Assembly: GCA_030704615.1 (NCBI GenBank)
Contig: CM060733.1
Span: 50,716,001-50,780,000 of the forward strand
Direction: 5' to 3'
Origin: Takakia lepidozioides
Lineage: Eukaryota; Plantae; Bryophyta
DNA length: 64,000 nt
Shown here: positions 18 to 63,910 of the stretch, in pieces
Numbering within the stretch: position 1 is the stretch's first letter
Layout: each line of letters begins with the position of its first letter
Notes under the pieces: generated by a model
The model's input: only the letters and a program-made list of their open reading frames with translations
Told to the model about the DNA's origin: nothing
Databases searched by the model: none
Program-made: the position numbers and the translations under genes

Positions 18-3000
18 TATACAGAGCCATCTTCAGTCCTCTGATCATCTTTCTGGCTTGGTGAGTTGGTTTATTGCTTCTGACTTGGGGGACCCACAGG
101 ATGACAAAACCATAGCTCACCCCACTGTCAACTTGCTCACATCTACGATCAAGGTGGACGCAGAGCAGACAGACCTCCGATTCTGCTTCCGCATTATCTC
201 TCCAAACAAGAATTACACTCTTCAGGTACCCCCTCCATCTTTCCTTATTCGTGGAATGATAAATCCCTTGATGCAACAGGAAGTTGTTGGGATGTGGATA
301 TAAAGCATGCTTGCAATGCATGTGCAGGCTGAAAACGCAATTGATAGGATGGATTGGATGGACAAGATAACCGGCGTTATTGCATCTCTCCTAAATAGTC
401 AAGTCCCAGACCAGGTAAGACGGATTAAAGGGAAAACAGGATGCAATTATGCTGGTATTACATGTATTCAGTTGAACAAACCTCGTTCATTTCTACATCA
501 CTTGCTGGTGTTTCAAGTACCTAGGGGATGTGCCTGGTATAATTACAAATATGATACATGTAATATCTTGTAGTTACCATAGTTTTTATATGCCAAGGAG
601 TGTGAGGGATTGGACATTCAAGTTCATGAAACATGTGCAATTTTGGTGCTCAACAAACTAAGCTGGAAAGAGAGAAGTACTTCATTTACATGGCAGTGCA
701 GAACACAATTGGCAATCGTACGTAATGAAAATTGAGATGCTCCCATTGACCATCCCTGTGAAGCCTTATGAATGTTGTTGATGCAACTGGTTGGCAGAGG
801 CCTTATCGAAGTCCAATGAGTGGGGGTCACCATCGGACAGTTAGTGAGAGCAGTATGTTTAGTGCAGCATCTTCGGACCTGGACACTGTGGAGGACACAG
901 CAGTATCAAGAGGTTACTTTAGTAGTTCACATCGTGACCGTGGATCTGGAGGTGGATTACATTCTCAGAATTCATATGAACAGCAAGACAGGCCATTGGA
1001 CGTACTGCGACGGGTTGTAGGGAATGATGTGTGCGCTGATTGCAGTGCCGCGGAGCCCGATTGGGCTTCATTGAATCTGGGTGTCTTGCTTTGCATCGAG
1101 TGCTCAGGGGTGCATAGAAATCTTGGGGTTCATGTTTCTAAGGTATGTAGCAGTAGCAATCTTGTAGTTTCTTAGAGGTCTGACGGAGTACTAAAAAAAA
1201 GCAGCTCTCTCGGAATATCGAGAAACCAATAATATATCAGAACACAGTTGAGCGATTTTTCATTGATGTGCTGCTGTGCCAGAATAGCTATGCTGAACAA
1301 TGCTCGCCAAATTGCAAGCTGGTATTGCCACAGCTTGGAAGTTACTGGCAATCTTTATGCTAAGAAATGTTTTTTGTTTGTTTCACTGACTGAAATGGAT
1401 AATGATTAAATGCTTAAATGCATGTTTACCCATGGTATTCTCGATTCTGCCATCAAGAAAGTGTGTTTGTGTGCCGCATAAACAAAACCAGAAGTTGCTC
1501 AAAGTGTTGAGCTAATTTTTCCTTCCTTTATATCAAACATGTGTGACTTGCCTTGGTTTAACCCACAAACAAACCTTTTCTGGATCACAAAGCAATTGTC
1601 TGTGACTTGGACAATTTTAGGTGGTGGATTATGGTAGTCTTCCTGACTGTTTCTACTAGCTAGGATTTTTTTGCTAGCTGCCTACTAGGTGTTTTTCTTA
1701 ATTTTAGGATCCGTGAACTGGCTTGGTTTGGCTGGCAGGTGAGATCATTGACCCTGGATGTAAGGGTGTGGGAGCCGTCTGTCATTGGATATTTCCAGGC
1801 CATTGGAAATACATGTGCCAATTCAATTTGGGAGGGGCTTCTTCCAACAGAGGGCTGGACAAGAAGTTTTCCCTTCGGAGCAGCAAGCAACAGGTATTTG
1901 TGAATCTGAAGTTCGCTTACTATTACTCGGGCATTCCCTCATGGTCAGCACTTGGGTATTGTATGCTGATGGTGTTTTGTGAATGAACTGTTTTCAGTGG
2001 GGCTAGCCAGGATAGTGATCGCACCGGGGCAGATGTTGCAAGAGCAAAACCGGATTCCAGGGACCCTCTCCCTGTCAAGGAGAAGTTTATCCAGGCTAAG
2101 GTGCATTTCTCTCCTCTGTTTGTTGTTCTTTCTTGTTCTTGTTCTTTCCCTCACCCCTTTCCAACCCCCGCCACCAACAGTTGTACCTTTTCACAGTCCA
2201 GTTTGAGTGGCTCGCAACAAGGAGGAACAGCTGCACCAACGTAATTCTGTCTGGCTAGTGGCTGACTTTGGACATGGTTGATCTTTGCAGTATGTTGAGA
2301 AACGATTCGTACAGAAGACAAGGGTGGATCCACGTGGCCCTGCAGTGGCACGCCAGATCTGGGATGCCGTCCAAGCAAACAGGCAGCAACTTGCACTCCA
2401 TCTCCTCATCACAGCTGATGCTAATCCCAACACAACCTTGGAACAAGCAATAGGATCTTCAGATCCCTCACGATCACCATTAGTTGCAACCCTGACAACA
2501 GCACTGTCACGAAAGCACAGCGGTCCCTCTCAAAGCCAGCGCAGCAGCTGGAGTGGACCCTTAGTTGGAATGCACAGTTCGCCAGGTGTGTCAGAGTCAA
2601 GGTTGGCAGGTTCTAGCCCAGGGAGTGGAGCTAGGGGGAACGCTGCATCTAAATTGAGTAGCCCCGTATCCAGTGAACGGTCAGTTGACTCTATAAAGGA
2701 TATGCGTGGATGCACACTGCTGCATTTGGCTTGTCAACTTGGGGAGCTGAGTATGATCGAACTACTTCTTCAACATGGGGCGCAGGTCAATGTTAGTGAT
2801 GCTCTGGGCCGATCTCCTCTTCACCACTGTATTTTGAGTGGCAGAAATTCATGTGCAAAACTACTACTCACAAGGTACAGTTGTAAATTTCAATGCCACT
2901 ATTTTTGCAATATTATATGGGAAGATGCAGCAAGTTGGCATCTGCTGACTCTTATAAGCTTGTGGCCGTTTAGTCTGCAATTTTGTGATCAAGTTAATGG

Positions 3001-3388
3001 GACTTTCAAGCAGGTGGTCATTTTTCACTCAGTTATACAAGTGGTCTTGGAGTGGTTAGTTGTGCACTGATGATGTAATCCCATGTAAGCCTGCATGTGA
3101 CTTAAATCATCACCATTATCACTCGGGAACTCGGAACGTGCAATGGCACTTACCTTGTGGGCGTAGTTGTTGGCATGTTCATTTCACCCATTCAGTCGGG
3201 TTTATTAGGCAGCTTCCGCTACTTCGTGTGTTGACCTTGCATCTCACACTTTACTTCTTGCACCTTGCAGAGGAGCTAACCCATCTGCGACAGATACTTC
3301 GGGGAAAACTCCATTGGAGAGTGCAATGGACCAAGGTGCCATAACAGATGAAGAGCTTTTCCTTATGCTGTCTGAACCGAGCAGATAG
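18..3388 (+). CDS. ADP-ribosylation factor GTPase-activating protein, ACAP/AGD1-4 (VAN3/SFC) type; 5' part lies outside the window
   Basis: GT-AG exons ~18-225, 328-414, 798-1142, 1739-1893, 1998-2100, 2291-2874, 3271-3388 (TAG). They encode the PH-domain end ([27 protein letters not shown]...[22 protein letters not shown]), the ArfGAP zinc finger (CADC...[34 protein letters not shown]) and ankyrin repeats ([22 protein letters not shown]). Confidence 0.93.
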
Positions 3389-12429: not shown

Positions 12430-15400
12430 TCTACGTGCTGCTAGAAGCTGTTGAAGCACTCACTCCTCTCAAAACAATTGGTCTGGACGGCCTACCTATT
12501 GAATTTTTCAAGGCCCTTTGGCAAGGATTTTCTTTGCATGGCAAACGATGTCCTTCTGAAAGGAATCATACCTTCGCATTTGGCTTAGGGAATCATCACA
12601 CTCATTCATAAAAAAGGGGACCGTGATAACTTGGCTAATTATAGGCCAATCACCCTGCTGAATTCCTCTTACAAGATTAATACGAAGGCGCTCGCCATTA
12701 GGTTGCAACTTGCAACCCTTATTGTCTAAGCTTATTTGACCAAAACAGACCGGGCTTTTGAAACGTAGGATGATTCTTGACAATATTCTCCTTCTCATGA
12801 GGTCACCATGCTCACTCCTCCAATCAACTTCTTGCTATGCTTATGCTAGATTTCGAAAAGACCTTCGATAACATCAACTGGGAGTACCTGCTAGGAGCTC
12901 TCAAAGCTTCTGGCATTACGAGTCACTTCCTCGATTGAATTCATATCCTCCTCTCCTTGGCATCCAGTAAGGTGATTATCAATGGTGTCATCTCCACATC
13001 CTTCCATTTCTTCAAATCTGCAAGACAAGGTTGCCCGTTGGCTCATTTCCTCTTCCTCGTTGCTGCGGATGGCCTTGGACATCTCATGGACAAAAGACTG
13101 GACTCTATCGGCCTTGTAATTCCGGATCCTCTCCAGGCCACTGCCTGATTTTATTCCCTCCATTAAGTCCTCTCACTTACGCTGATGATACCACTCACTT
13201 CATTGATAACAACTCTTTTTTGAATGTCTGTTCTATCCTCAACTCGCTTTCAAGCTTTTGCTTGGCTTCTGGGCTAATTTAAGTTAATTGGAACAAATCC
13301 GTGGGGCTGCTCAGTCATATGTCTGATACAAGTCCGCTGCTCATTGCACTCCCTGGTGCATGGATCTTGGTCTGCACTGGCTCGTTGAGGGGGAAACTCA
13401 TGTTTTTCTAGGGCATCAATTTGGCCATAATCTTCCTGATAATGTTCATTTTGCCCCTGTCATTGCTAAGCTCAGGAAGAAGTTGGCTTACTACTGGAGC
13501 TCCCTGCATCTCTCCATCTTTTGGCAGAGGGCTCGTGGTCAATCAGATCCTTCTGGCCTCTATATGGTTAATTTCTTCGGTTTGGTCCCCACTGCCTAGG
13601 CTCTTCCTCATCAACCACATTAAGTCATTGATGAGGAACGTCATATGGGGAGCTACCTCTGCCTCTTCCAACAAGAGAGCCCTGGTTAGCTGGTCTGAAC
13701 TCTGCCAAAAAAAAAAAATGGTGGCTTTGGGTATTCTTGATCCGCAATCCCAAATCACGGCCCTTTTAGCCATGGGTTCCTAGAGTTCTCTGCCACTTTG
13801 CTAGTCCGTGGAGCTGTTTGATCAAGCAAGTCCATCTAACTGCTGCTATTCCTCGTACCAGCCATTTGTGGCTCTCCTCGCTGAAATGGGTAGTTCAAGG
13901 GGGCAAGTTACTACGATTCATCGCCCAAACTTGGATCTCAGACCTGGCAGTCAATTTGGCATGTCTGGTGTAATCATGACTCCAAGGATCTTATTCTATG
14001 TTATAGGCCCATTGGGAGTCTTCTCCCCTCTCACATGTTTCTCACCTCTGGAACAAAGGTGCTGGTTCCTTAATCACTCCGGCCTTAGTTGCCGAGGGAT
14101 TCTCCTTCAGGAGGGTGTCTAGAGGCTGGGATACTGTTACTGGCAGCCTTCCACAATCGTGGTGTGATTTGCTTTCTTATCCTCACCCCTGCATTCTCCC
14201 ATTATGGCTTGGGTTCTCTTGGAACTCTGAGTTGAGAGCCTTATTTGCAATTTTCAGCCCATGATGGTCAATTAAGTGGCCCTTGTTTCAAGGTTCTCCC
14301 TGACGGTTCCCTATCTGCTCTTGAGCAGGCCGAGATTCTGCCTGCCAGTTTTGAATTCTATGTTAATAGGGTCTTCTGCCTTACTATTGGTAGGTCGAAC
14401 CTAGCCCCACCCCAACAGCTGCAGCACTATGCCCGAGATTTCAAATGGTTCTTTTCTGCTCCGATCAGGTTCTTGCAGTTTGATCACGGGGAGTGGTTCT
14501 GAATGAACAAGATTCATGATCATCTCTTCAGCTACTCTGTCAAGATGGGCTAACACCAACATGTAGCCCAGTGGTAAGGGCATATACCCTCTTACGAGTG
14601 GTTGTTGGTTCAAACCACCCTGTTGGTTGTTATAAAGGTGTCCACTTTCCTACCGGAAGGCAGTAGCCCTTCTGGGCCAAGTGACACCATAAGTTATGCT
14701 TGCTTCGGCAAAGTGTCCATTTTTTTTTTGTTTTCTTCAAGATGGGCTTTAGTCTCCTGATGCTGGCTATGAAATTCGAGCGTAAGTAATCCAAGAAATA
14801 GGCTCACAATCAGGGCCATCCTATCTTGTGGAAACCGGTCTGGAATGGTATTTCGAAAAAACACCGTTCTTCTCAAATTTCAGCCTTCCTCTGGAGAGTG
14901 GCCAACTGAATCCTTCATGTGGGACAGTTCTTTTCTGAGATCCCCTTTAATTGTTCTACTTGCAACCTTCAATTGATTGAGAGTATCGAGCATTGTCTGC
15001 TCCTCTGTCCGTTTGCCGCCTCTAGCTGGAACCATGTGGGTTGCTTTAAAGGAATTGTCCTCTGGCATCTATGGAAAGCGAGATGTCATTCTCTTCCAAA
15101 ACTCTCCTCCTTGTTTACAGAATTAGGTGTTGTTTGGAGTTCACTCATATTTAATGTCTGAGGCTCGCAAATCCCGATTGGTGCTGTCTGCAGCTTTTCT
15201 CAGATGTGGGAGCAGTAGGAGAACGCAGCTGTTTTTTGCCTTCGACAGGTCCTTGGGATCAAAAGGGGATTTCATCTACAAGCGTACCTCTGATACCAGA
15301 ATCCAATGGAACGACAACATCCCAACCTGCTGGAAAGCTCTAATAGCGCTAGGCGCTCCCCCAGCCGAGGCTGATGAAGCGGAGATGAACTGGCGTCACC

Positions 15401-18600: not shown

Positions 18601-21050
18601 CTACTTACTTCCTTTATTCTCCAAGTGGCGGTACTGGAAGCATGCAATCTGCAGACATGAATTCCTATTGAACACTGAGATATGGGGATATTCAAGGCCA
18701 GTCTGCATCTCCGCAATGAACAAGAAGCATCACACATGCGCTAACACATGCTTCCCTGAAACGCGCCAGAAATCATGGTGTGCAGGCGTTGGCCCTTGCC
18801 AAGCTCTAAATTCAGCCTCTTTCTTTATGGACTGTTCGGTCCCCACTTTTCGGTGCTCTATTGAGATTTAGCACTCGTATATTTAGTGAAAGCGTGGATC
18901 AAAACGGTCTTTGAAGTTTGAACCCAGGGAGGGGAAGCAGCTTGTCAACTGGCACCCCCTCAGGACTTAGTCCTGGGCTCCAATGAGCTGTAGAACTTTA
19001 AAATCCCGACTTATGCATTCAGGGACTGGGTCTTACACTTCAATGAGCTGTAGGACTTTGACTCTTCATAAAACTGCATCAAAACCCCAATTGCCTCTTT
19101 GCCAATAGGACAAACAAAAGGCAAGAGCTGGCATAAAATCAGTGCCTCCCTCCTTGTGAGCTCATTGGCCAGTAGCCCACATATACTACAGGATTCGTTT
19201 GGTAGTTCCCAAACTGTGGACTGATCTCCTCAGCAGTTTTGTGACCTACCCAAAGTCTCAGGCACAGTCTTATGGGTGAACCTAAGTTCTACAAAAGGTG
19301 AATGTATTTGACTGCATTTGATGAAAACCAGAAATTTCTTAGTTAGCTTGGTTACTTAGGCGGATTATGGGAACAAGTACAGACCATGGCCACTTATCTG
19401 GCCTCCCATTATGGGTTTTATTGTTCTAGTAAGAACACAGGCTACTGGTCTGTCACACAAAATTATGTGACACGGTTGCTCCCAGTGCTGAGTGTGCTGC
19501 TGCTTACTGTCTCGTCACCCACAATTATTGGTACTCACAAAATTGAAGATACTCAATTTGTAGGACAAAGGGAGGGAATTCTATCTGGGCCCAATTCTCA
19601 ATAAGAGCTTTGAGACAAAAAGACAGCTGATGCAAGCTAATATGACATGTGGAGTTTGAAGACTGGTAGTAACATGGATCCAACAGTGCCTGATTGCACC
19701 TGAATGCCAATGCATGAATGCATGGCTGCATATTGACTTTCATAGAAAGGCTATGCCAGACCTTATATGGACCCCAACTATCCTGCGCATTTCTCGATTC
19801 ATGTGCACATCTCTCAAGGACTATGCTAATACAGCCCCACCCCCAGAGTCTGTAACACACATATTGCTAAATTCAACAAAGATAAGCTTATGGGTTGTGC
19901 ACAATTCCGCAGGAAAGTGCAAGGCAACAACATGTAACATGCCATGAAGCAGTGTGGGCATGGGATGAGATGGGTGCACAGAAAGAGTGTGCTGGTGGAC
20001 GAAAGGAAATGGCAGGCCAGCGACAGCGACCAACCGCATAACACATTCACACTCGAGACTGTGCGATCTCAGAGTAAAGCACGAACAAATGCGAGTCTCA
20101 CGTGCGCCGTGGAAGCGCACAGTCCGGGGGGCGTGCATTATGAGGAGGGACCCACGCATAATGCCATGGAGCGCATTAGCGCAGGGATGCATGAAGCACA
20201 TTCAGCGATCGATGCATGAGTGATGCACAGCGCATGAAGAAAAGCTGCAGCGAACCGGAGGAAGCGACCGACATGTTCGCTTTCATTTAGAGAGGGGGCC
20301 TGAGCAACCATCTTTGTAAATCGAGTCTGACCAAGTAGAGAACAGAGCACTCCGGGTGCTCTCGAGAAGCATTACTGAAAACGTCCTGCCTTCTCACTTC
20401 GTCAGTGCTCAAGACGCTCGTGATCTCTGGTCAGTTCCTGCAGCTGGATAGAACTGAATCTACCCACAGTTCAGGTTGCACTGCTTCGGTTGAAGTATCG
20501 ATTCGACGCCCATTCTGTGTGCCCGCCCATATGAGGGTGGTGAGTACTGTGTAGCATCCGGAAGTTGGAAGCTTAGTGGTTGCCCAATACAGTTGTGTGC
20601 TGGCGGAGAATGCTGGCCTTTCTTTCAAATCTGGGCCAGGAATCCCTCGGAGGAGAGCTACACATATGTTGAGCCTTTTGGCAGGCACATGGGCGTGGTG
20701 AGACGGACCTTTGAAAGAGGGGCAGTTTCGTAGGCAACTGGAAGGCCAGTAACGAGCTTAGAACAAGAGTGCTGCCGGGATCACACCACATTTGGAATTG
20801 ACAGGGTTGAACATCGGCGAACTGTGGTGCAACAAAAAAGTTACAATGAGCTGCTCTAGCCGTACCTCATTTTGCAGCCGATCACCGTTGAGAGATATGG
20901 GGCTGCCCGCCATCTATATTATGCGTCGGTTCTAGAGTTGCACCAAGTGCGTGCATCTCGTTGCTCTCGGTGCCGAGGCTCCAGCTCGGCTTTGGAAGAC
21001 GTGTAAAACATCTTTTTGACCTGTCGAAAATTCGACAGGAAAGCATTAAA

Positions 21051-24000
21051 ATGGGAGAATTGGTGGAAGCGTTGCTGCCTCAATCGATCTTCAGTCTACT
21101 AGATCAGTTACTTGCACTGTGGAACACAGTGCGAGCACCGATAGTAGCACCGCTGCTGCAATGGGCCATCAATATTTGCTTGGTGATGGTCACCATGCTG
21201 TTCATCGAGCGGTTATTCATGTGCGGGGTGTTGGTAGTCGTAAAGTTGATGCGTCGCACCCCAGAAACGATCTACAAGTGGGAAGCTATCAAGGACGACG
21301 TGGAGTTGGGGAATTCTGCTTATCCCATGGTTTTGGTACAGATTCCCATGTACAATGAGAGAGAGGTGCTCGTTCTCTCCATCTCTCTCTCTCTCTCTCT
21401 CAACTTTCGAGTTCTGAAGCATCTCTTTTGACTCTCACCTGTCTAAGGCCGGTTACGAAATTTTGAATGAAGTAACGCTACTGAGGAGCCACATCACATT
21501 CAGCAGCCTTCATTTTCCCTTTGAACTTGCAGTTCACTGCGAGCATACAGTCGGCGAGTCTAGTTGGTCAGGTTTCTCACATGGTGAAGGTTCAGTCCTC
21601 AGGTCGGTAAGAGTGCAAGGGCGTGGTGAGAAGTTGTTGTAAGAGATTTGTTCTCCCAGGCCAGAGTTGTAAAGAAAAGAGGTGGTGCATGGATGGAGCA
21701 GGTGTATCAGCTGTCAATACAGGCGGCGTGTGGATTGTCGTGGCCATCTGATCGCATTATTATTCAAGTGTTAGATGACTCCACGGATCCTTCTATCAAA
21801 GTATGCAACCGACCTTGGTGCCTCAGTAGCCCCGTTTTGGGACACATGTTGTATCTCTCTGCTGACTTTCCAACGACCAGACTTGCTAGGAGTGTTTGGG
21901 AAGTTGTGAAATCCTTGCAATTTACATTAAAACGCCAGCAGACCTGGTCCATAGAATTTCTGTGGGCACCACAATGCTTGTACACGAGCACTGCAGAACC
22001 TACACACATGCACAGTGGAGTCTTGCAGCGAGCCAGACTGACGCACGATGCACGTCTTCTTACAGGAACTGGTGCAGATAGAATGTCAACGCTGGGCCAG
22101 TAAAGGTCTCAACATCAAGTATGAAGTTCGAGGTAGTCGAAAGGGTTACAAGGCAGGAGCGCTGCGGCAAGGGATGAAGCACCCCTATGCTCAGAAATGC
22201 GACTTTGTGGCCATCTTCGATGCTGATTTCCAGCCCGAGCCGGAGTTTTTGTGGCGCACTGTCCCCTACCTCGTTCACAATCCCCAGCTGGCGTTGGTCC
22301 AGGCCCGGTGGAAGTTTGGTACACTGCACACACCCTACCTACCCTGCCTGCATCCTCTTGTCATTGCATTCTCCTCTATCTGCCCCAGCCTTGCAATCTA
22401 TCTAATCTCCAAGTTCTCAGTGAGACCTGAACAGTTGGATATAACTTGCTCAAACCCACCAGCAAGAAATTGTTATACTACCCAGCGGTTCACGAGTCAG
22501 TCTTACATCTCGTTAGAGAACTCGGAGCTCCGCACACCAATTTCTAGCTCCCGAGCGTCATTTACAAATGACCTCGACAGATTTGTTTAAGGCAACTGAA
22601 GAGTTTATCTCCTAGTTGGAGGTGTTGTCCCCATCCATGACAGCCTCATCCATGATCAGAGACTGTAAGTACATAATCTGCATGAGCTGGTTGCATGTGT
22701 ACCTCTCTCCTCATGCTGGATCCATCAAATTCTTCCAAATCTGAACGTCCCATCTGTTTACACCTCGTGGCTACTCTCTCCTCCACCAAACTGGTGACAG
22801 TGAGAAGGTGGCTAGACAGCTCCTAGCTGCTGCATCCGACCGGCAACGGTACAGTTATGGAGGTGAAAAGTGTAAAGAAGCATCTCAGTCGTCTCTCTCC
22901 CCCGACACACTGCGGAACTGAACATGTGTCGCCAGCGGGAGTCTGCCACCCATTGGGATTTCAGTTCCCACGCTGGATGTCTCATTCATCCTCGTCCCTT
23001 TCTTCATCCATCTCTCGGTAACACCTCTCGGTAACACGCACGGTTCTGCTCTACAACCGTGCGACGGACGGACGTAGTCTCCGTCGAGGATTCGTGCGCA
23101 TCCGTCAGTCTCCGTCGTCTCCCTCGGTCGGGCTCCTTCGTCCGGAGTGTACTGCAGAGCAGCACTTACGGTGCGCAGCTGTTTGCGGGGGGGCCAATGA
23201 AGCAGGCGATCAGATGTGGGTCCCGCAATAATGCACTGATGCTGTCGCCGACAGCTCTTAAAGGCTGTGTCGTATATTATTTTGTATGATGGGAATGTTT
23301 GATCCGATAGAGTGGTGGTGGTAATGAATTAGGGTGTCAGTAAGAGAAGAATCCCTGCCTGCGTACATGCATCCGCCATAGCTGTGAGCCACAGTGCTGT
23401 GGTGGGCCATGATGACGGACTTTGAATCCACATGGGATCATGGATTTCACATTCCGTGTACCGAAGAGTACAGAGGAATTATTATTGAGCCTTATAGATG
23501 TGCGTCTGGGACTGGGACGGTTGTGGGATTGGTATTCATGACACTACAAAGTTTTAAACTCTACCGCCCTTCGTTACTCGGAATGAGATGCTTGAGATTT
23601 TACTTCGCAACAGGAAGAGTTGAGTGCATGTTTTCCGCGACGTTCAATGTGCATGAGATTCACGGAAAGCCCAGTGTGACCCAGTCAAGAACGGAAGTAA
23701 TTGTTAGCTGCAGTTTCAGGAGCATGGTAAATTCTCGTGTTTCCAAGGGCGCTTGATCCGATCTCGAATGTCAGATGTTTAAACTGGTGTGGATTTAGAC
23801 TTCAATGCAGGTGAAGAACTAAATTTGGATTTGTTTGTGTATTGAGCACTTTGGGGTATTATATTAGCACCGCCTTTTCTCCTGAATCCGCCACTAAATG
23901 TTTTTCTTGTTGCGCAGTGAATGCGGATGAGTGCCTCATGACGAAGATGCAGGAGGTATCACTGAATTATCACTTTTCTGTGGAGCAGCGAGTGGGCTCT

Positions 24001-36335: not shown

Positions 36336-39300
36336 CTAGCTCATGATGGAACTCAGTTCCGAGAAGTCCCACAGGAAAACATCCGAGCTCAGGACCTTCT
36401 CAAGCCCAGCCGCGTCACCGCCAGCAAGGCTTGTGCTGCTGCAGCTGCTACCGCTCGGGCTCGGGCTCCACGGTTCCACTTCACAGTTGTTTGGTATCTG
36501 GTTGTGGCTGGGGCTTTCCTGACATTGACTTCCTGAGCTAGTGTGCTCATGCGGGTCCCGAAGGAGCGCTGTAAACATTTGTGGCGTGTCCGACATTGAC
36601 GGCATTGCAAGGTGGCTTGCCAGTGTGGTGCCTGGACCTCCTGAATTGCTACCTGTGACAGTTCAGATGTAATATCAAACAACAGCCGGCCCTACGTAAG
36701 TGGGCAGTGCAAGGATACATACATGTCCATACCCCTTATAGAGCAGCCTGTGGGACCATATCTAGAACTCTGTGAAGGTTTCTATAAGTATCAGATGGGT
36801 CCCTATATATTTCATAAGAATTGTACATAGAGAAATCAATACGGGTCTACAGTCCAGCTAGTCTAGCTATCAATATTGTGCACAGTATGGGGCCAGATTT
36901 ACAATAACATGTAGAATCCTCAACATAAGAGGAGAGTACGCAGCAGTACCTGTCCAGTGTCCTCCGTGAGTCCTGCATGTTAGTTCCCCGTCCCTCCCAA
37001 CACTGAGACTTGGAAGCTGCCTTCCAGCCGCTGTGTTCACCCCACCAGAGCTAGTGGAGTCCAGAAGCATATCTAACACTGATTTGGGCAGCTGGGCATC
37101 TCCTTGACTTCCCATCATCTGATTGCACACCTGAGAGAGGCTACCAGCTGAACTAGGCCCCTCTCCACCACAGAACCTGCTGCGCATCATTGCCATATTG
37201 TGGGACAAAGCTTCCTCCCTTCCACTCACCCCATCCCCTCCAACCTGCATGAAATCAGGGACCTGCTCGGAACTTTAGGGTCGGTCCAAAAACCGAACAG
37301 TTAATTATTGGACCCCTGACCTCGGGAAATTTTAGGTGAGGAAAATGTAGACCTGTATGCACTCGCCATTAGGTACAGGCCTGAACCTACTAGATTCAAG
37401 CGAAAGCTCTGCAAGTCTTCGGGACGAAAGAGTCGTGACCAAGCTTTGTAAGCTAGTATGGATCGAACAGTTTTGATTTTCCTATGAGCCTAGGACAAGA
37501 ATCTATGCACTTACACTATACTGGAACTCTACTTCGCTACGCGCCCGGAATATCACATGTGAAGCTCGCAAAGTCAGATCCGGCAAGAATCCTTTCTCCC
37601 CGAAGAGTCTAAGGATCATAGCTTACCTGCTTTGTCTGCACCGCTCTCGATAAGCTGTACTTAATTTTCTGCACCACAGCATCCACTTGCAGATGCCTAC
37701 TGTCGGACCCAGGGTCACAGCGGTCACTGATCGGTGTATCGTAAGGCCCTGCAAGAACCGACTTGGGACTGGACACACTGGTGCGAGGGGCAGCCACCAT
37801 ATCCCACGATTGTCGCCCCGTAGATGTCGAACGAGGCATCGGTGCCACGGGAATATTGGACCCTTCCAGCTGCCAGTCTGGGCGCTTCCTCATCAGCACA
37901 TTCAACATGTCGTCTTTGAAACAGCCCAATGCAGCCTCAGCGATTTCCCCCCCTTTCGGAAGCGCCATGCTACCCGCCAGGTCCGCCAGCAACTGCGAGA
38001 TCGGCTTATGAGTTATGGGGTCGATGCCCATTTCGCACAGCTTCTTCTTCAGCCGCGTGTTCCAGTAGTTCTTCACATCATTATCCGTGCGTCCTGGCAG
38101 CTGTGCTGCTATCAGTGACCACCTGCAGCACTCAACCTCCCCGCTTCAATACTCCCACTTACACCTTTCTCCCTCGTCACTCTGCGCGTTCGTAAGTCTC
38201 CAGACGTGTAAGACCTCAGGAGTACTCAGCACTGCCGAGGAAGACAGAAATTCAAATTTGAATTCAAATTATCCCTAGTTCGAACCACGGGTGACACACT
38301 GACGGACGCTAGCCGTTGACGTCAGTTGGTGGAAGCTGCGGCGGACGGCACGGTGCACGCGGGTACCGCGCGGCCGTTCTACGGCCGCGCCGTACCCGCG
38401 GTCGCCATTACTGCCACCGTCCAGCCTTCTGGAGTAAGCAATGATAAGGCTCTCGATGAACGAACCCGATCCACTGCCACGTTCATCCGTGACGAGTGCC
38501 GTGCGGGCCACACTCGCGGCCGCGGTTGGTGAGTCTCTCTCTCTGTCTCTCTGTCTCTCTCCCGTCCAACTCCAGACCTCGCAGGCCTCGAATTGAAGAG
38601 AACTGGAGATATCTAGACGAGGCCCAAGTCATCAGCGTGAGCTGAATTGGTGAGGAACTAACTAAGTATGTGGAGAGGATGGGGTGAGGGGGAGATAATG
38701 GGAGGTGGTTCGAAGTGATGACAAAGGCGGTGGTGAAGGGGTGGGTCAAAGGTGTGGCAGGTGCTGTGCTGACAGGAGCAGAAAGTGGCGAGTGAGGTAA
38801 TAAGTGAGAGGGTATCGGGGAGGAATGATGAGGGAATGTAGATCGTAACGTCAACGCTGGCGCAGCGGTGATGCAGGGGAATCATAGCCACCCTCTGTTT
38901 GTAGAGAGCGCTAGGATAGCTGACGCTTCGAGGCGTATTCAACACTTTGATCTGACATCTGCCAGAGGGTAACCCCATGTTCGCTTTGTACAAAAGCACA
39001 AGATCCAACTTTATAGAGATCACATCCATGCACCAGACGGGTCCAGCTTCTGTGGTAAGCAACTGGGCTACTACTGCGGACGGAATGCAGACGTAGGCTT
39101 TTAGAGGCGCGGCATTACTAGGGGGGCTCTACATTACTAGGGGGGCTCTAGAGTAACGGCCGCCATTATACCGGCCATCTGTCGTAATGAAGCTTACGTG
39201 CGGAAAGGGCGAGAGCTCGAGAGAGAGATCAGCGGGAGAGAGGACTTTTGATGATTGCAGCACAGGACGGCGATCAACAGCATGCCTTGTGGCTTGGGCG

Positions 39301-42637: not shown

Positions 42638-43738
42638 CTATGATCTTCTCGGTTGGACGAGCTTTCCATGCATTCCTGTTTGCGAATGCATGCAGGTGTT
42701 GGGATGTGCGTTGAACAAGAACTTGTAAAGCTCTGCATATAAAGTCCTCTTCTCAGCGTTTTGTCCCATGACCAATTGGGCAAATGCAAACTTGTTGTGG
42801 ACGTGGGTTACCAGCTGGCTCTCTTCCTTATACGGACCTCTCCCATATTGTGTAAGCGAGATGGCATCCGGAGACAATTCAACCTCGTCTATGATTCTGT
42901 CGTCTTCGAGTATTGCTTCTGCAAACTTGTTCCACGTGATGCCCTTTGAAAAGAATTTGGGAGCGATATTGTGTGCTTCTTGCATAAACTTCCACAAATC
43001 GCCGTCCAAATGTGGGTGCAACCCCAGTCGTATTGTGGAATCATGTTGTTGTACGCGCATTTTTAAGGCCCTCTGGTACTGATCATATATTTTGGAGCCC
43101 ACCAACTTCTTTGAGATCCGCTCCCGAGCTTGATCATGGAATTGGCGCAAATAGATTTTTCGCATGGGTGATAACAATATCCTCTCTTGTTCAACTTGAC
43201 GTGTCTCCAGTGAGGTGATTCGCTTCACATGTCTGTCCAGTTTGTTGTCGATCATCCTCACTCTTTCAACAAGCTCTTCGAGATTGAATTTTGTATCCTG
43301 AGTTCTTTCTCTCTCTCGCTCGTACTTTATCGCAAGGTCTTCTATCCTTTCCTCGAGACTTGTAGGGATTTGCAATTCTTTCTCATTTTTCAATGAATTT
43401 TTGTGACTCAAATCATCATCAATTTGTAAGAAATTGCCTCCTTTAGCCTCCAAGAGTTTGATGCGCTTAGCCTCTTCCATACATTGAACACACCGGTGAA
43501 GCAACTTAACTTGGACGGGATTCTCACTGCGGCTAATGTAATTCACAAACAAACAATCTGCCTGTGCTTTGGCTTGATCATCAAACACAGCGTGATCTTG
43601 AGCAATAAGGTCCAGAAATATGGTGTTTCCTGCTGATTGCCCTTCCATTATGCCTTCAACCAAGTATAATCAAAGATAAGTCTTGATGCACTCTGCCAAG
43701 TCTCTAATGTTTGGCACCTCTATAACATTGGCCTTCAT
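42638..43738 (-). CDS. Intronless orphan ORF (coiled coil plus helical C-terminal domain); one in-frame TGA at codon 23, 336 aa from the ATG at 43648
   Basis: Longest uninterrupted ORF in the window (341 codons). The upstream ORF 43670-43894 is in the same frame: ATG at 43738 gives MKANVIEVPNIRDLAECIKTYL*LYLVEGIMEGQ. Heptad-like segment LEERIEDL...LEELVERVRMIDNKLDRHVKRITSLE. Function unknown. Confidence 0.6.
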
Positions 43739-59685: not shown

Positions 59686-60816
59686 TCAAATTGCCAGCCT
59701 TGGGTCCTGCAAGTGTAGTGTACAGAGATCCCCGAACATTGGTGGTTATAAATCTTTGGACCAGTTGCATCTTGCACATAATGATATGCACAGCAGCAGC
59801 CGCTTCCAGAGAACTATATGCCTTAGGAGACGCTGTTGCAGAATCACTTTGCTTCTAGAAGAATTTGATCAGCAAACATCTACGCTAAATGGGCGTTGAG
59901 TTGTGAGATACACAAGGCAAAAATCTCTAGTGCAGCGGATCGAATTGTTGTTTAAGAGACCTGGTTCTAGATGCAATTTGTGTCGAGATCCTAGATTTCC
60001 AAAGTAACGTCTTTCTAGTTCATGGGGCCTTCATAAATGAAGTGGCGGTGTTACTCACAATAAGAGAATATAGTGCGAGTGGTTGTAGCCGAGAGCTGTG
60101 GCGATTAATTTGATTTCTGTGTACAAATGAGGGCAGGAGATGACAGGGAGCTACAGCTTGAGGTCATGTCCCCAACCTTTTCTTCAGCAACCTCCCCTTT
60201 GCTATTTACATCACACCAATGTGGACTGTTTACAAGTGGATCTCTGTCCAGAAGCCATTCGGAAGCCATCGGTCATATAAGGATCTGCAACCCACTTACA
60301 TGAAGATCTTGGCTGATGACAGTCGGTTATCCTGTCTGGTTACCAGTTGGCGTGGGTGCATTGGAGCTGCCTCCATCTCTCTGTGTACCTTCAGATGAGC
60401 AGAGAGGCGAGGTGGAAGGAGTTTAAATATCCGGCAACACCCTCTTCTCTCTTTTCGCAGTAGGGGAAGGAAGAACATTGGTAGCTAGCAATGCGGCGAC
60501 ATATGTGTTGGAAAACAGCTCCATATTCAGCGAAACTATAACTTGATCTGTGGAGGAAGTTAGAGACACCAAAGTAACTGACCTCTGTATTTGGATTGGG
60601 AGAGGCTTCGACTTAAAGTTTAAGCTAGACCATTGTGGGACTACTTAACACATATAGTAAAAAGTAGGTCTAAATCGCAAGAGATTAATATAAGAAACCT
60701 CAGGCTGAAGCCACAGATCGATTTGTTCTTCTTCCGCTGTGTTTGTGATTCTATGGTTGGGTGGAAAGCTCCTATACAATCCTCGTTAATGTTAATCGAC
60801 AATCTACGTTTACAAC

Positions 60817-63433
60817 ATGGCGATCTCCTTGGCAGTAGCTGCGATCGTAGCTGGGATCGACGGAGTTGTGGCTGAGGTCGAGACAAAGTTTGCCTTCTTC
60901 AATGCTGCAACAATTTTACAGGGTCTCTTTGTTGCAGTTGTAGTCTCTATCATCGTCATGAAGGTGAAGGAGGCGAAGCTGAATCTGCCGCCGGGCCCCA
61001 TCGCTCTACCTATCGTTGGCAACTGGTTGCAGGTTGGTTCAGAGTGGCGACGTTTTCTTGGATGGACGCCTTTTTTGGAGTCATGTTTGTCTTGCCTCTT
61101 CTGGTTCAGCTTACCGAGCAGAACGGTGCTGTTCAATGGCCTTCTTAATCTATGGCACCTGGCACTTTCAAGTGGTTGCCATTCTGCATGCAGAATGGCC
61201 AGTCCGTCGCCTTTCTGCGTGGCCAGAGTAAGCCATGGAAGACCTTAACGTTAGATCGTGGTGGCGCAGGACTTCATACGGATATCTGTCTGCCGACCTT
61301 TGTAGTTTCGCTTTGTCTGTCGACCGGTAGAAACAGTAGTTTCTACAGTGAGATGAGCCCAGTTTTTTTTTTGATGTCTTCTGCCCTCTGATGTAAATTT
61401 GTCTGCAGGTTGGAGATGATCTGAACCCTCGGAAACTTGCTGAGATGTCAAAGAAGTACGGTGACTTGTTCTTGTTGCGAATGGGGCAGAGGAACTTTGT
61501 GGTAATCTCCTCTCCAGAGCTTGCGAAAACTGCCCTTCACACCCAAGGCGTCGAATTTGGCTCCAGAACACGGAACCTAGTCTTCGACATCTTTACGGAC
61601 AACGCCAACGATATGGTGTTCGCAGCTTATGGTGAGCACTGGCGTAGAATGCGACGCCTCACGACCGCCCCCTTCTTCACCAACAAGGTTGTCCAAAACT
61701 CAAGGTTTGGGTGGGAGAGTGAGATCGACTGTGTGATTAAGGATTTGAAGGCGCGTCCCGAAGCTTCAACGACCGGAGTTGTGATAAGGAAAAGGTTGCA
61801 GCTGATGATGTACAATGTCATGTACCGCTTGATGTTTGATTCGCGATTTGAATCTGAAGACGACCCCCTGTTTGTGAAGCTCAAGGCGTTGAATGGGGAG
61901 AGGAGTCGGCTTGCACAGAGTTTTGAGTACAACTATGGTGACTTCATCCCCATCTTGCGGCCATTCTTGAGGGGCTACTTGAAAATCTGCAAGGAGGTCA
62001 AAGAACGGCGATTTGCACTATTCAAGGAGCATTTCGTCGAGGAGCGCAAGTAATTGGCTTCAAGTTGGCTGTTTTGTTGAACCTTCTCTGTACATGCTAA
62101 GCTTGAGATCATGGTGTATACTCTCCAAAGCCTTTCTGTTCCTATCTCTTGTAATGCTGGTGTCTTCCATGATGTTGCCAGCCAGGATAGAGGGGAAGGT
62201 TACGTAGCCTAACGATTTTGATCTCTGAGGGTATCCCCGTCTAATGACCAAGTAATCTGAAATGGTATGGAATGGTGCATCCCCGTGTAAACTTTTTTTT
62301 GTAAAGACGTGAACAACGATTGACACATGGGTCTGCAGGAAGTTGATGAGTTCGAAGGGTAGCAACGCAGAGAGTGACAGGTGCGCCATTGATCATATTC
62401 TCGATGCACAGAAAAGGGGGGAGATCGATGAGAATACTGTGCTCCTCATTGTTGAGAACATCAACGTTGCAGGTTGAGCTCTAACTCCTGATGTCGGGCC
62501 GTCACCTTTTCAACCTAGCTGTGGCTTGTTGAATAGACAGAGCTTGTTTAGGTCATTCAAGGCTGCCCTTTTGGAGGAGAGGGAGGTAGCAACTGTTGTA
62601 GGTCCAGTACTAACAGATATGTACTACATGAGCAGAAAGATGAGAGCAAAGCTAGTGTTTCAATGGAGGATGGTTGGAGGTAGCATATTCTAAAAAAATT
62701 CCACTGCATGTTTCTCCATCACCTGCTAGTGTGTAGCAGCGTGTTGCTGAGTATGGTGATCAGTTACTCCCGCTCCAGGCCCTTCTTGTGCAGTTCTCTC
62801 TCATTCTGCCTAACCCATGCCTTGTGGACTGATGCAGCAATCGAGTCAACAGTCTGGACGATTGAGTGGGGAGTGGCTGAGCTTGCCAACAATCCTAAAA
62901 TGCAGAACCAAATTCGCCACGAGCTTGATACTACACTGGGAAAGGGGGTCCTGATTGAGGAACCTGATACAAATGACAACAAGCTGCCATATCTCTCTGC
63001 TTTTGTGAAGGAGGTTATGCGGTTGCACATGGCAATCCCGTTTCTTGTGCCTCGCATGAATCTGCATGCTGCGAAACTGGCAGGTTATGATATCCCCGCT
63101 GAGACTAAAGTCCTGGTGAATGCCTGGTGGATTGGAAACAATCCGAACTACTGGGATAAACCTGAGCAATTCATGCCAGAGCGCTTTCTGAATGAAAAGA
63201 TTGAAGCTAGTGGGAATGACTTTCGATACCTGCCCTTTGGAGTAGGCCGGCGAGCGTGCCCTGGACTGATTATTGCCATGCCACTGTTGTCCCTTGTGCT
63301 CGGTCGGCTGCTTCAAACGTTCGAGATTCTACCTCCACCCGGTGTTGATAAGCTGGACATGACTGAGAAGGGGGGACAGTTCACTCTTCACATTGCCAAT
63401 CACTCCACGGTGGTAGTCAGACCTAGGGCCTGA
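60817..63433 (+). CDS. CYP73A: Cytochrome P450 CYP73A (cinnamate 4-hydroxylase-like), 528 aa, divergent active-site motifs
   Basis: Exons 60817-61032, 61409-62049, 62339-62472, 62838-63433 (1587 nt, open). [56 protein letters not shown] and heme motif [10 protein letters not shown]. Confidence 0.96.
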
Positions 63434-63738: not shown

Positions 63739-63910
63739 GACAACCAGCATGTAGCCCGGTGGTAATGTGCACATACAGCGTTGGATGTGGTTGTGGGTTC
63801 ATACCACGGTCTGGTGTGTCATGAAGGTGTCCACCTTTCAGCTGGAAGGCAGTAGCCCTTGTGGTGAAGTGACACCATAAGTTACGCTCCCTTTGGGAGG
63901 TGTCATACTT
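63739..63910 (+). mobile_element. tRNA-derived SINE (family A, copy 2)
   Basis: A-box TAGCCCGGTGG, B-box GGTTCATACC; shares GAAGGCAGTAGCCCTT and AAGTGACACCATAAGTTA with 14552-14736; perfect 12-bp TSD TAATCCTTTGCC (63727-63738 and 63911-63922). Confidence 0.88.

Follow-up and report, generated by a model that had tools for sequence, protein, structure and literature searches.

Cinnamate 4-hydroxylase (C4H) is an entry enzyme of plant phenolic metabolism, and CYP73 is among the most constrained plant P450 families, with duplicates that are usually lost and a family dN/dS of 0.051 (PMC5850782). The window analysed here, a 64,000-nucleotide stretch of DNA from Takakia lepidozioides, contains an undamaged CYP73 gene with alterations in motifs that are nearly invariant in C4H, which an earlier note had read as suggesting a new substrate or reaction. 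The locus thus raises the question of whether this gene encodes a new enzyme or a weakened spare copy of C4H. Judged from sequence comparison, a new enzyme appears less likely than a weakened spare copy; a redundant duplicate under relaxed selection would account for the pattern at least as well as a new substrate.

The window gene and its surroundings

The CYP73 paralogue (+ strand) comprises four exons, 1587 nt and 528 amino acids with no internal stop, in a splice model drawn from the window letters with GT-AG borders at all three introns. A second CYP73 copy in the same genome (seen in contigs aligned to the locus; hereafter the sister) is 92-95% identical in its exons, and the introns no longer align. 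The features of the window gene, and of three other genes in the window, are as follows.

60817..61032, +: exon 1, from the ATG; long N-terminus with hydrophobic stretches at about residues 1-19 and 28-49
60988-60999, +: PPGP hinge, exon 1
61033..61408, +: intron 1, GT-AG, 376 nt; joint identical in the sister contigs of runs X5 and X6
61409..62049, +: exon 2, residues 73-285; P450 domain, B-C loop/SRS1, helices C-G
61418..61438, +: DLNPRKL; H79P common to the sister, N81K private to the window copy
61553..61633, +: SRS1, residues 121-147; private V129L, G138A, T144A, V145A; common to the sister G136D, Q139N
61592-61633, +: altered SRS1 motif quoted in the earlier note (14 residues, letters left out)
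61658..61669, +: end of helix C; I156L, M157T, V159A, all private
61901..61924, +: RSRLAQSF, intact; carboxylate-binding R237/S238/Q242
62050..62338, +: intron 2, GT-AG, 289 nt
62339..62472, +: exon 3; helix H and start of helix I with N316D, D318N, N319T, Y322L; NINVA unchanged
62457-62860, +: I-helix motif spanning intron 3 (13 residues, letters left out)
62473..62837, +: intron 3, GT-AG, 365 nt; splits codon A331
62838..63433, +: exon 4, residues 331-528 and stop; I-helix AIESTVWT, ExxR, SRS5, PERF, heme loop, SRS6
62846..62848, +: S334; Ser at the catalytic acid-alcohol Thr (T310, CYP73A1-type numbering)
63011-63022, +: EVMR
63035..63064, +: SRS5 (10 residues, letters left out); L399F, H403R; I371/P372/V375 equivalents unchanged
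63176-63187, +: PERF
63236..63265, +: heme-binding loop (10 residues, letters left out); Cys471 at 63257-63259; motif that of active PpCYP73A48
63371..63391, +: SRS6, GGQFTLH; S513T; K484/F488 equivalents unchanged
2285-3070, +: ankyrin-repeat protein gene
20961-22590, +: GT2 glycosyltransferase gene
37609-38076, -: MYB-like gene

The hallmarks of a heme-thiolate P450 are all present: Pfam p450 matches (exon 2, E=6e-35; exon 4, E=4e-60), ExxR, PERF, FxxGxRxCxG with its Cys, an N-terminal anchor and the proline hinge. The frame, splice sites, ExxR, PERF and heme Cys are intact, and the RSRLAQSF and NINVA segments unchanged, just as the earlier note had described them. Sorghum C4H (6VBY) was the top PDB match of exon 2 (E=1.9e-98) and was matched by exon 4 (E=3.7e-81), scoring far above any other PDB entry for both large exons. 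Exon 4 also contains the moss-type 2-residue insertion before KLPY, and the intron position at the end of exon 1 is the same as in the spliced sister transcript. The double hydrophobic N-terminus (60817-60963) resembles the double-anchor CYP73 type of PMC5850782; the sister version is 9 nt longer.

The window copy showed zero base differences over 975 nt from an independent 2017 sample (run X5), a match that includes A138, A144, A145, L156, T157, A159, F399, R403 and T513, and the DNA contigs of sample S1 showed no substitutions; its letters are therefore not assembly errors.

By the nomenclature rule, amino acid identity above 55% places a P450 in a subfamily such as CYP73A. Core identity of the window copy was 76-78% to moss CYP73A and approximately 70% to seed-plant CYP73A, and the family-specific F-helix Arg/Ser/Gln (R225/S226/Q230 of PpCYP73A48) is present as R237, S238 and Q242. 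In a CYP73-only tree it grouped with the moss CYP73s (support 86/81), on a long branch (0.34) as sister to every other sampled moss CYP73. The window gene is an intact CYP73 paralogue and a member of CYP73A. The I-helix signature AAIETT, found in all active bryophyte C4H enzymes assayed in PMC13646711, reads AAIEST here. Among the matches listed in protein database searches, none exceeded about 80% identity or carried the DLNP motif, and the window copy and sister were likewise absent; metagenome scans gave no match.

We found no second P450 within the 64-kb window, and hence no tandem array. In the DNA run, contig depth over 60424-60795, directly upstream of the ATG, reaches 6-9x the single-copy level. 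The sister transcript aligns with 60380-60421 and picks up again near 60846, the intervening sequence being about 115 nt in the sister and 424 nt in the window. This segment is a 5' UTR intron or else an inserted repeat in the 5' region of the window copy, and weak 14-nt inverted arms lie at 60540-60553 and 60711-60724. Approximately 310 nt past the stop, 63740-63910 is a very high-copy short repeat (summed contig depth >200,000 in X1) with a 77% identical copy at 14555-14708, probably a small non-autonomous element. An intronless 341-codon frame at 42638-43663 (- strand) matched no Pfam family, and no exact copy of it occurs in the protein collection.

Divergence at conserved sites and in the substrate pocket

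We compared the window copy with 178 full-length CYP73 proteins, a set biased to canonical C4Hs (top search matches, with a diverged fern clade and fused entries removed), against which 32 of 285 positions conserved at >=95% were altered; the median homologue had 2 such alterations and the highest 21. Twelve changes fall on positions invariant in all 178 homologues. G138A, Q139N, T144A, T334S, L336V, L399F, H403R and S513T occur in 0/178, as does H79P. The motif changes listed in the earlier note are all present in place and rare at conserved sites, save one: the Ala of RRACPG is found in 15/178 homologues, including the proven C4H CYP73A48 of P. patens, and so is no divergence. The same note had held that finding these residues in characterised bryophyte C4Hs would tell against it; RRACPG is such a case, but SRS1, the helix I motif, the SRS5 His and the SRS6 Ser are canonical in CYP73A48, which shows only 2 deviations at conserved sites versus 32 in the window copy. 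The Thr to Ser change in helix I arose at least three times in diverged CYP73 copies and in none of the 178 canonical ones.

These alterations gather around the pocket (SRS1/4/5/6), as had been claimed. Conserved sites within the substrate-recognition sites (SRSs) were altered at 15/77 versus 7/159 elsewhere (p=5e-4), a p-value that is optimistic, like the others for SRS enrichment, as the SRS limits follow standard P450 anatomy and were chosen after the changes were seen. Invariant sites were altered at 10/56 in SRSs versus 2/98 elsewhere, and enrichment persisted with sister-shared changes removed (p=0.002). SRSs make up 28% of sites and hold 47% of the deviations of the window copy, against 12% in ordinary homologues. 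In residues 160-299, which include the F-helix anchor, 0/59 highly conserved sites were altered, and the longest clean run covers 63 such sites in a row (p=0.005-0.016). Private changes within residues 73-159 numbered 4/26 in SRS1 and 6/40 outside, and were thus no denser in SRS1. Side chains became smaller at 6 changes and larger at 7; a larger-pocket reading was rejected in the absence of a net size trend.

The changes that crowd the pocket nonetheless leave untouched nearly every residue for which substrate contact is reported. Equivalents of F107, F119, V305 and F488, which we take to be further cinnamate contacts of C4H, are unchanged in the window copy, and its SRS1 retains the F107/V118/F119 equivalents. 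Likewise unchanged are the equivalents of V118, R213, S214, Q218, N302, A306, I371, V375 and K484, the cinnamate-contact residues reported in PMC11405693, PMC6270737 and PMC10184913. In the first shell the catalytic Thr alone is altered, to Ser, with the hydroxyl retained. Thr to Ser at this site is tolerated in other P450s; our literature search found no direct support for this tolerance, the nearest case being a stable CYP102 multi-mutant. H403R, in SRS5, aligns with an Arg of ferruginol synthase (5YLW), and Arg at this position is a heme-propionate ligand by established P450 anatomy.

The sister copy, selection and expression

Coding divergence between the two copies was 7.39%, and synonymous divergence about 0.18-0.23. 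The sister letters listed extend to position 61668, and private and shared changes are resolved for residues 73-159 rather than for the C-terminal half. Of the 22 base differences between the copies across residues 73-159, 12 are synonymous and 10 are replacements; 10/10 replacements fall on the window copy, with the sister matching seven other moss C4Hs at each of them (p=0.002). Private changes include N81K, V129L, G138A, T144A, V145A, I156L, M157T and V159A; H79P, V105I, G136D and Q139N are common to both copies. Through window 61418-61633, the spliced sister reads DLNPRNL and FTDNGNDMVFTVYG.

This pair resembles one already published. In the trees of PMC11405693 (Knosp et al. 2024), one moss pair at a basal position, Tle1c07234.1 and Tle3c04501.1 of Takakia lepidozioides, has support of 100/100 and branches of 0.0132 and 0.0609, respectively (sum 0.0741); the protein tree there gives 0.020 and 0.071 on a common stem of 0.106. 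Unequal branches, basal moss position and a summed length of 0.074 equal to the 7.39% between window copy and sister are features of both pairs, and Tle3c04501.1 is likened to the window copy by branch lengths and tree position, not letter for letter. Since the divergence of 7.4% matches, the window gene is probably Tle3c04501, already on the published tree; in the passages of PMC11405693 consulted we found neither assay nor discussion of Tle3c04501.1. The sister is probably the working C4H of the species, because the published tree shows two copies only. If the sister is the main C4H, this moss runs the phenylpropanoid entry step on an unusual SRS1.

The branch dN/dS of the window copy in residues 73-159 was 0.25-0.50, depending on the allotment of synonymous changes, and published branch lengths suggest a whole-core value of roughly 0.26-0.36. 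Rough estimates, in which SRS changes not known as shared were counted as private, gave 0.6-0.8 for all SRSs and 0.9-1.3 for SRS1 and SRS4, which would place the latter two near neutral and not clearly above 1. Neutral evolution since the duplication predicts about 5 stops and about 110 replacements; we found 0 (P(0) ~0.005) and about 34, which rejects neutrality and bears out the earlier view that the changes are not random decay. An unexpressed gene with evenly spread changes and dN/dS near 1 had been named there as evidence against a new function: the changes are in fact clustered and the whole-gene value is 0.26-0.36, but the ratio is about 1 in SRS1 and SRS4. With no stop, frameshift or splice loss and whole-branch neutrality rejected, the gene does not have the marks of a pseudogene; a recent loss is compatible with these data.

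The sister is present in runs X5 and X6, both guessed to be RNA, as long contigs from which the same three introns have been spliced out. The window copy is represented in X5 by three short pieces of low depth: one from exon 2, one across the border of exon 2 and intron 2, and one of exon 4 with 137 nt past the stop. It was not among the X6 pieces listed; its own splice joints were not seen in X5/X6 contigs, which show presence and not transcript level or absence. A fair reading is that transcription of the window copy is weak or conditional.

Competing explanations and known CYP73 enzymes

The reading that we favour, although we rate it about as apt to be wrong as right, is that the window gene is a lineage-specific young duplicate of a C4H gene in an early-diverging moss, redundant, under relaxed selection, and C4H-like but weaker. 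The sister would carry most of the C4H work, leaving the window copy under relaxed, not absent, purifying selection. Its product would be an ER-anchored heme-thiolate monooxygenase supplied by NADPH-P450 reductase, in which a cinnamate-type acid may be gripped by its carboxylate on R237/S238/Q242, with the ring above the heme, and then 4-hydroxylated. Turnover would be slower or less tightly coupled, because Glu-Ser would replace Glu-Thr as the proton-delivery pair and because of repacking in the B-C loop, in helix C and where helix I begins. Fold, heme and carboxylate-anchor sites would stay fixed and efficiency-tuning sites drift near the neutral rate; relaxation would free those invariant sites that tune efficiency first, plausibly near the pocket. 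A branch dN/dS well above that of the family, SRSs that are approximately neutral and unchanged contacts are consistent with a weaker spare copy, and the sister is itself altered at near-invariant SRS1 sites (G136D, Q139N), which suggests that the lineage tolerates pocket drift. Two points tell against the weaker spare: the changes shun residues 160-299 and favour SRSs, and positive selection on the pocket would look alike; and the sole assayed AAIEST moss enzymes are inactive on cinnamate, though the carboxylate site is rebuilt there.

That same SRS enrichment, in all three of its forms (15/77 versus 7/159; 10/56 versus 2/98 at invariant sites; p=0.002 without sister-shared changes), is an argument for neofunctionalisation in progress, with the B-C loop, helix I start and SRS5 reshaped by selection around a retained carboxylate anchor and a shifted aryl-acrylic acid preference, for example towards cinnamates with ring substituents (3-coumarate among them), or a change of ring position. 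The conserved fold, heme and F-helix residues would fit, as would a dN/dS of about 1 or slightly above in SRS1 and SRS4 under some assumptions, and 3-coumarate to caffeate is an existing side activity of bryophyte C4Hs (PMC13646711). We consider this possible but doubtful: the first shell is unchanged but for Thr to Ser, size shows no trend, SRS1 is no richer in private changes than its surroundings within residues 73-159, transcript evidence is weak, and the SRS limits were chosen with the changes known. The new substrate or reaction suggested in the earlier note loses further ground in that Ser keeps the hydroxyl, H403R lies where other P450s have Arg, RRACPG occurs in an active C4H, H79P, V105I, G136D and Q139N are common to the spliced sister, and SRS dN/dS is not clearly above 1. 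A young CYP73 with altered substrate or ring position and the carboxylate anchor retained would be a rather doubtful candidate; if true, it would be a CYP73 with a demonstrated non-C4H main role, and its 93%-identical sister a direct control for mapping causal residues.

Early decay, in which a once constrained gene later lost useful activity or expression with a stop or frameshift yet to come, is unlikely in our judgement. The thin transcript evidence, with one piece extending into intron 2, would suit it, as would the multi-copy sequence 5' of the ATG, in a stretch that is ~310 nt shorter in the sister transcript, the 12 changes at positions invariant in 178 homologues, and the analogous P. 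patens copies that are inactive (CYP73A51) or unexpressed (CYP73A50); against it stand the rejection of whole-branch neutrality, the clustering of changes (the 63-site clean run), the intact splice sites, ExxR, PERF and Cys, and identical alleles in an independent sample. Gene conversion, homogenising mid exon 2 with the sister and thereby erasing changes and inflating the apparent SRS concentration, is highly improbable. Divergence between copies is indeed 3.2% in 61670-62049 versus 8.4-9.3% in flanking coding parts (p=0.004), but synonymous change alone would yield 14-16 differences there and so fits the 12 found (P(12 or fewer)=0.2-0.4), the introns on either side can no longer be aligned at the 88% level, and the copies sit on different chromosomes, if the gene names are right.

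If the window copy is merely a weak spare, it represents ordinary unequal evolution after duplication. It reached AAIEST independently, with the anchor intact and a close sister, and so provides a clean natural test of second-shell residues for C4H efficiency and specificity; the pair also tests whether Thr to Ser alone matters.

The diverged AAIEST copies of P. patens are among the closest known parallels. PpC4H3 (AAIEST) is inactive on cinnamate, 3-coumarate and dihydrocinnamate, and bryophyte C4Hs convert 3-coumarate to caffeate (PMC13646711). P. patens CYP73A51 (Pp3c3_17840) is reported to yield no product from cinnamate and to fail in rescuing Arabidopsis cyp73a5-1, and CYP73A50 to be unexpressed. 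CYP73A51, CYP73A50 and PpC4H3 resemble the window copy in being diverged duplicates of moss CYP73, in the AAIEST of helix I and in their weak or absent expression. CYP73A51 reads DLKHRKL, FAGKGQDIVFTNYG, RCRLPAQNS, IAAIESTLLS, IPLLVPHMNV, RRSCPG and GGQFSLH; its carboxylate segment is rebuilt, whereas the window copy has an intact one. CYP73A51 is part of an old clade that includes Ceratodon. Judged by motifs, the window copy has neither the RCRLPAQN-type insertion nor the LLS after AIEST of the CYP73A50/A51 clade, and its identity as a CYP73A51/PpC4H3 orthologue was rejected, AAIEST alone being common. The negative assays of CYP73A51 and PpC4H3 therefore do not transfer, and on these motifs the Thr to Ser change in the window copy and CYP73A51 is convergent.

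A literature search found no CYP73 with a main reaction other than C4H. The diverged fern CYP73 clade (P0277, P0123, P0271-P0275; Adiantum, Ceratopteris and others) reads SLNVQAIETTLCS or NLNIQAIESTLYS, mostly RRCCPG, and a GGQSRLH-type SRS6, and P0277 also reads AIEST. With a conserved and more strongly altered pocket, this fern clade would be a better candidate than the window copy for a changed CYP73 function.

Among proven enzymes, P. patens CYP73A48 (XP_024373833.1) has 77% core identity and the same R/S/Q anchor, RRACPG and insertion before KLPY as the window copy, but differs in its canonical SRS1, AAIETTLWS, SRS5 His and SRS6 Ser. Sorghum bicolor C4H1/CYP73A33 (PDB 6VBY) is the nearest solved structure for both large exons, with all P450 core motifs aligning; it differs from the window copy in having a canonical pocket and no moss-type insertion.
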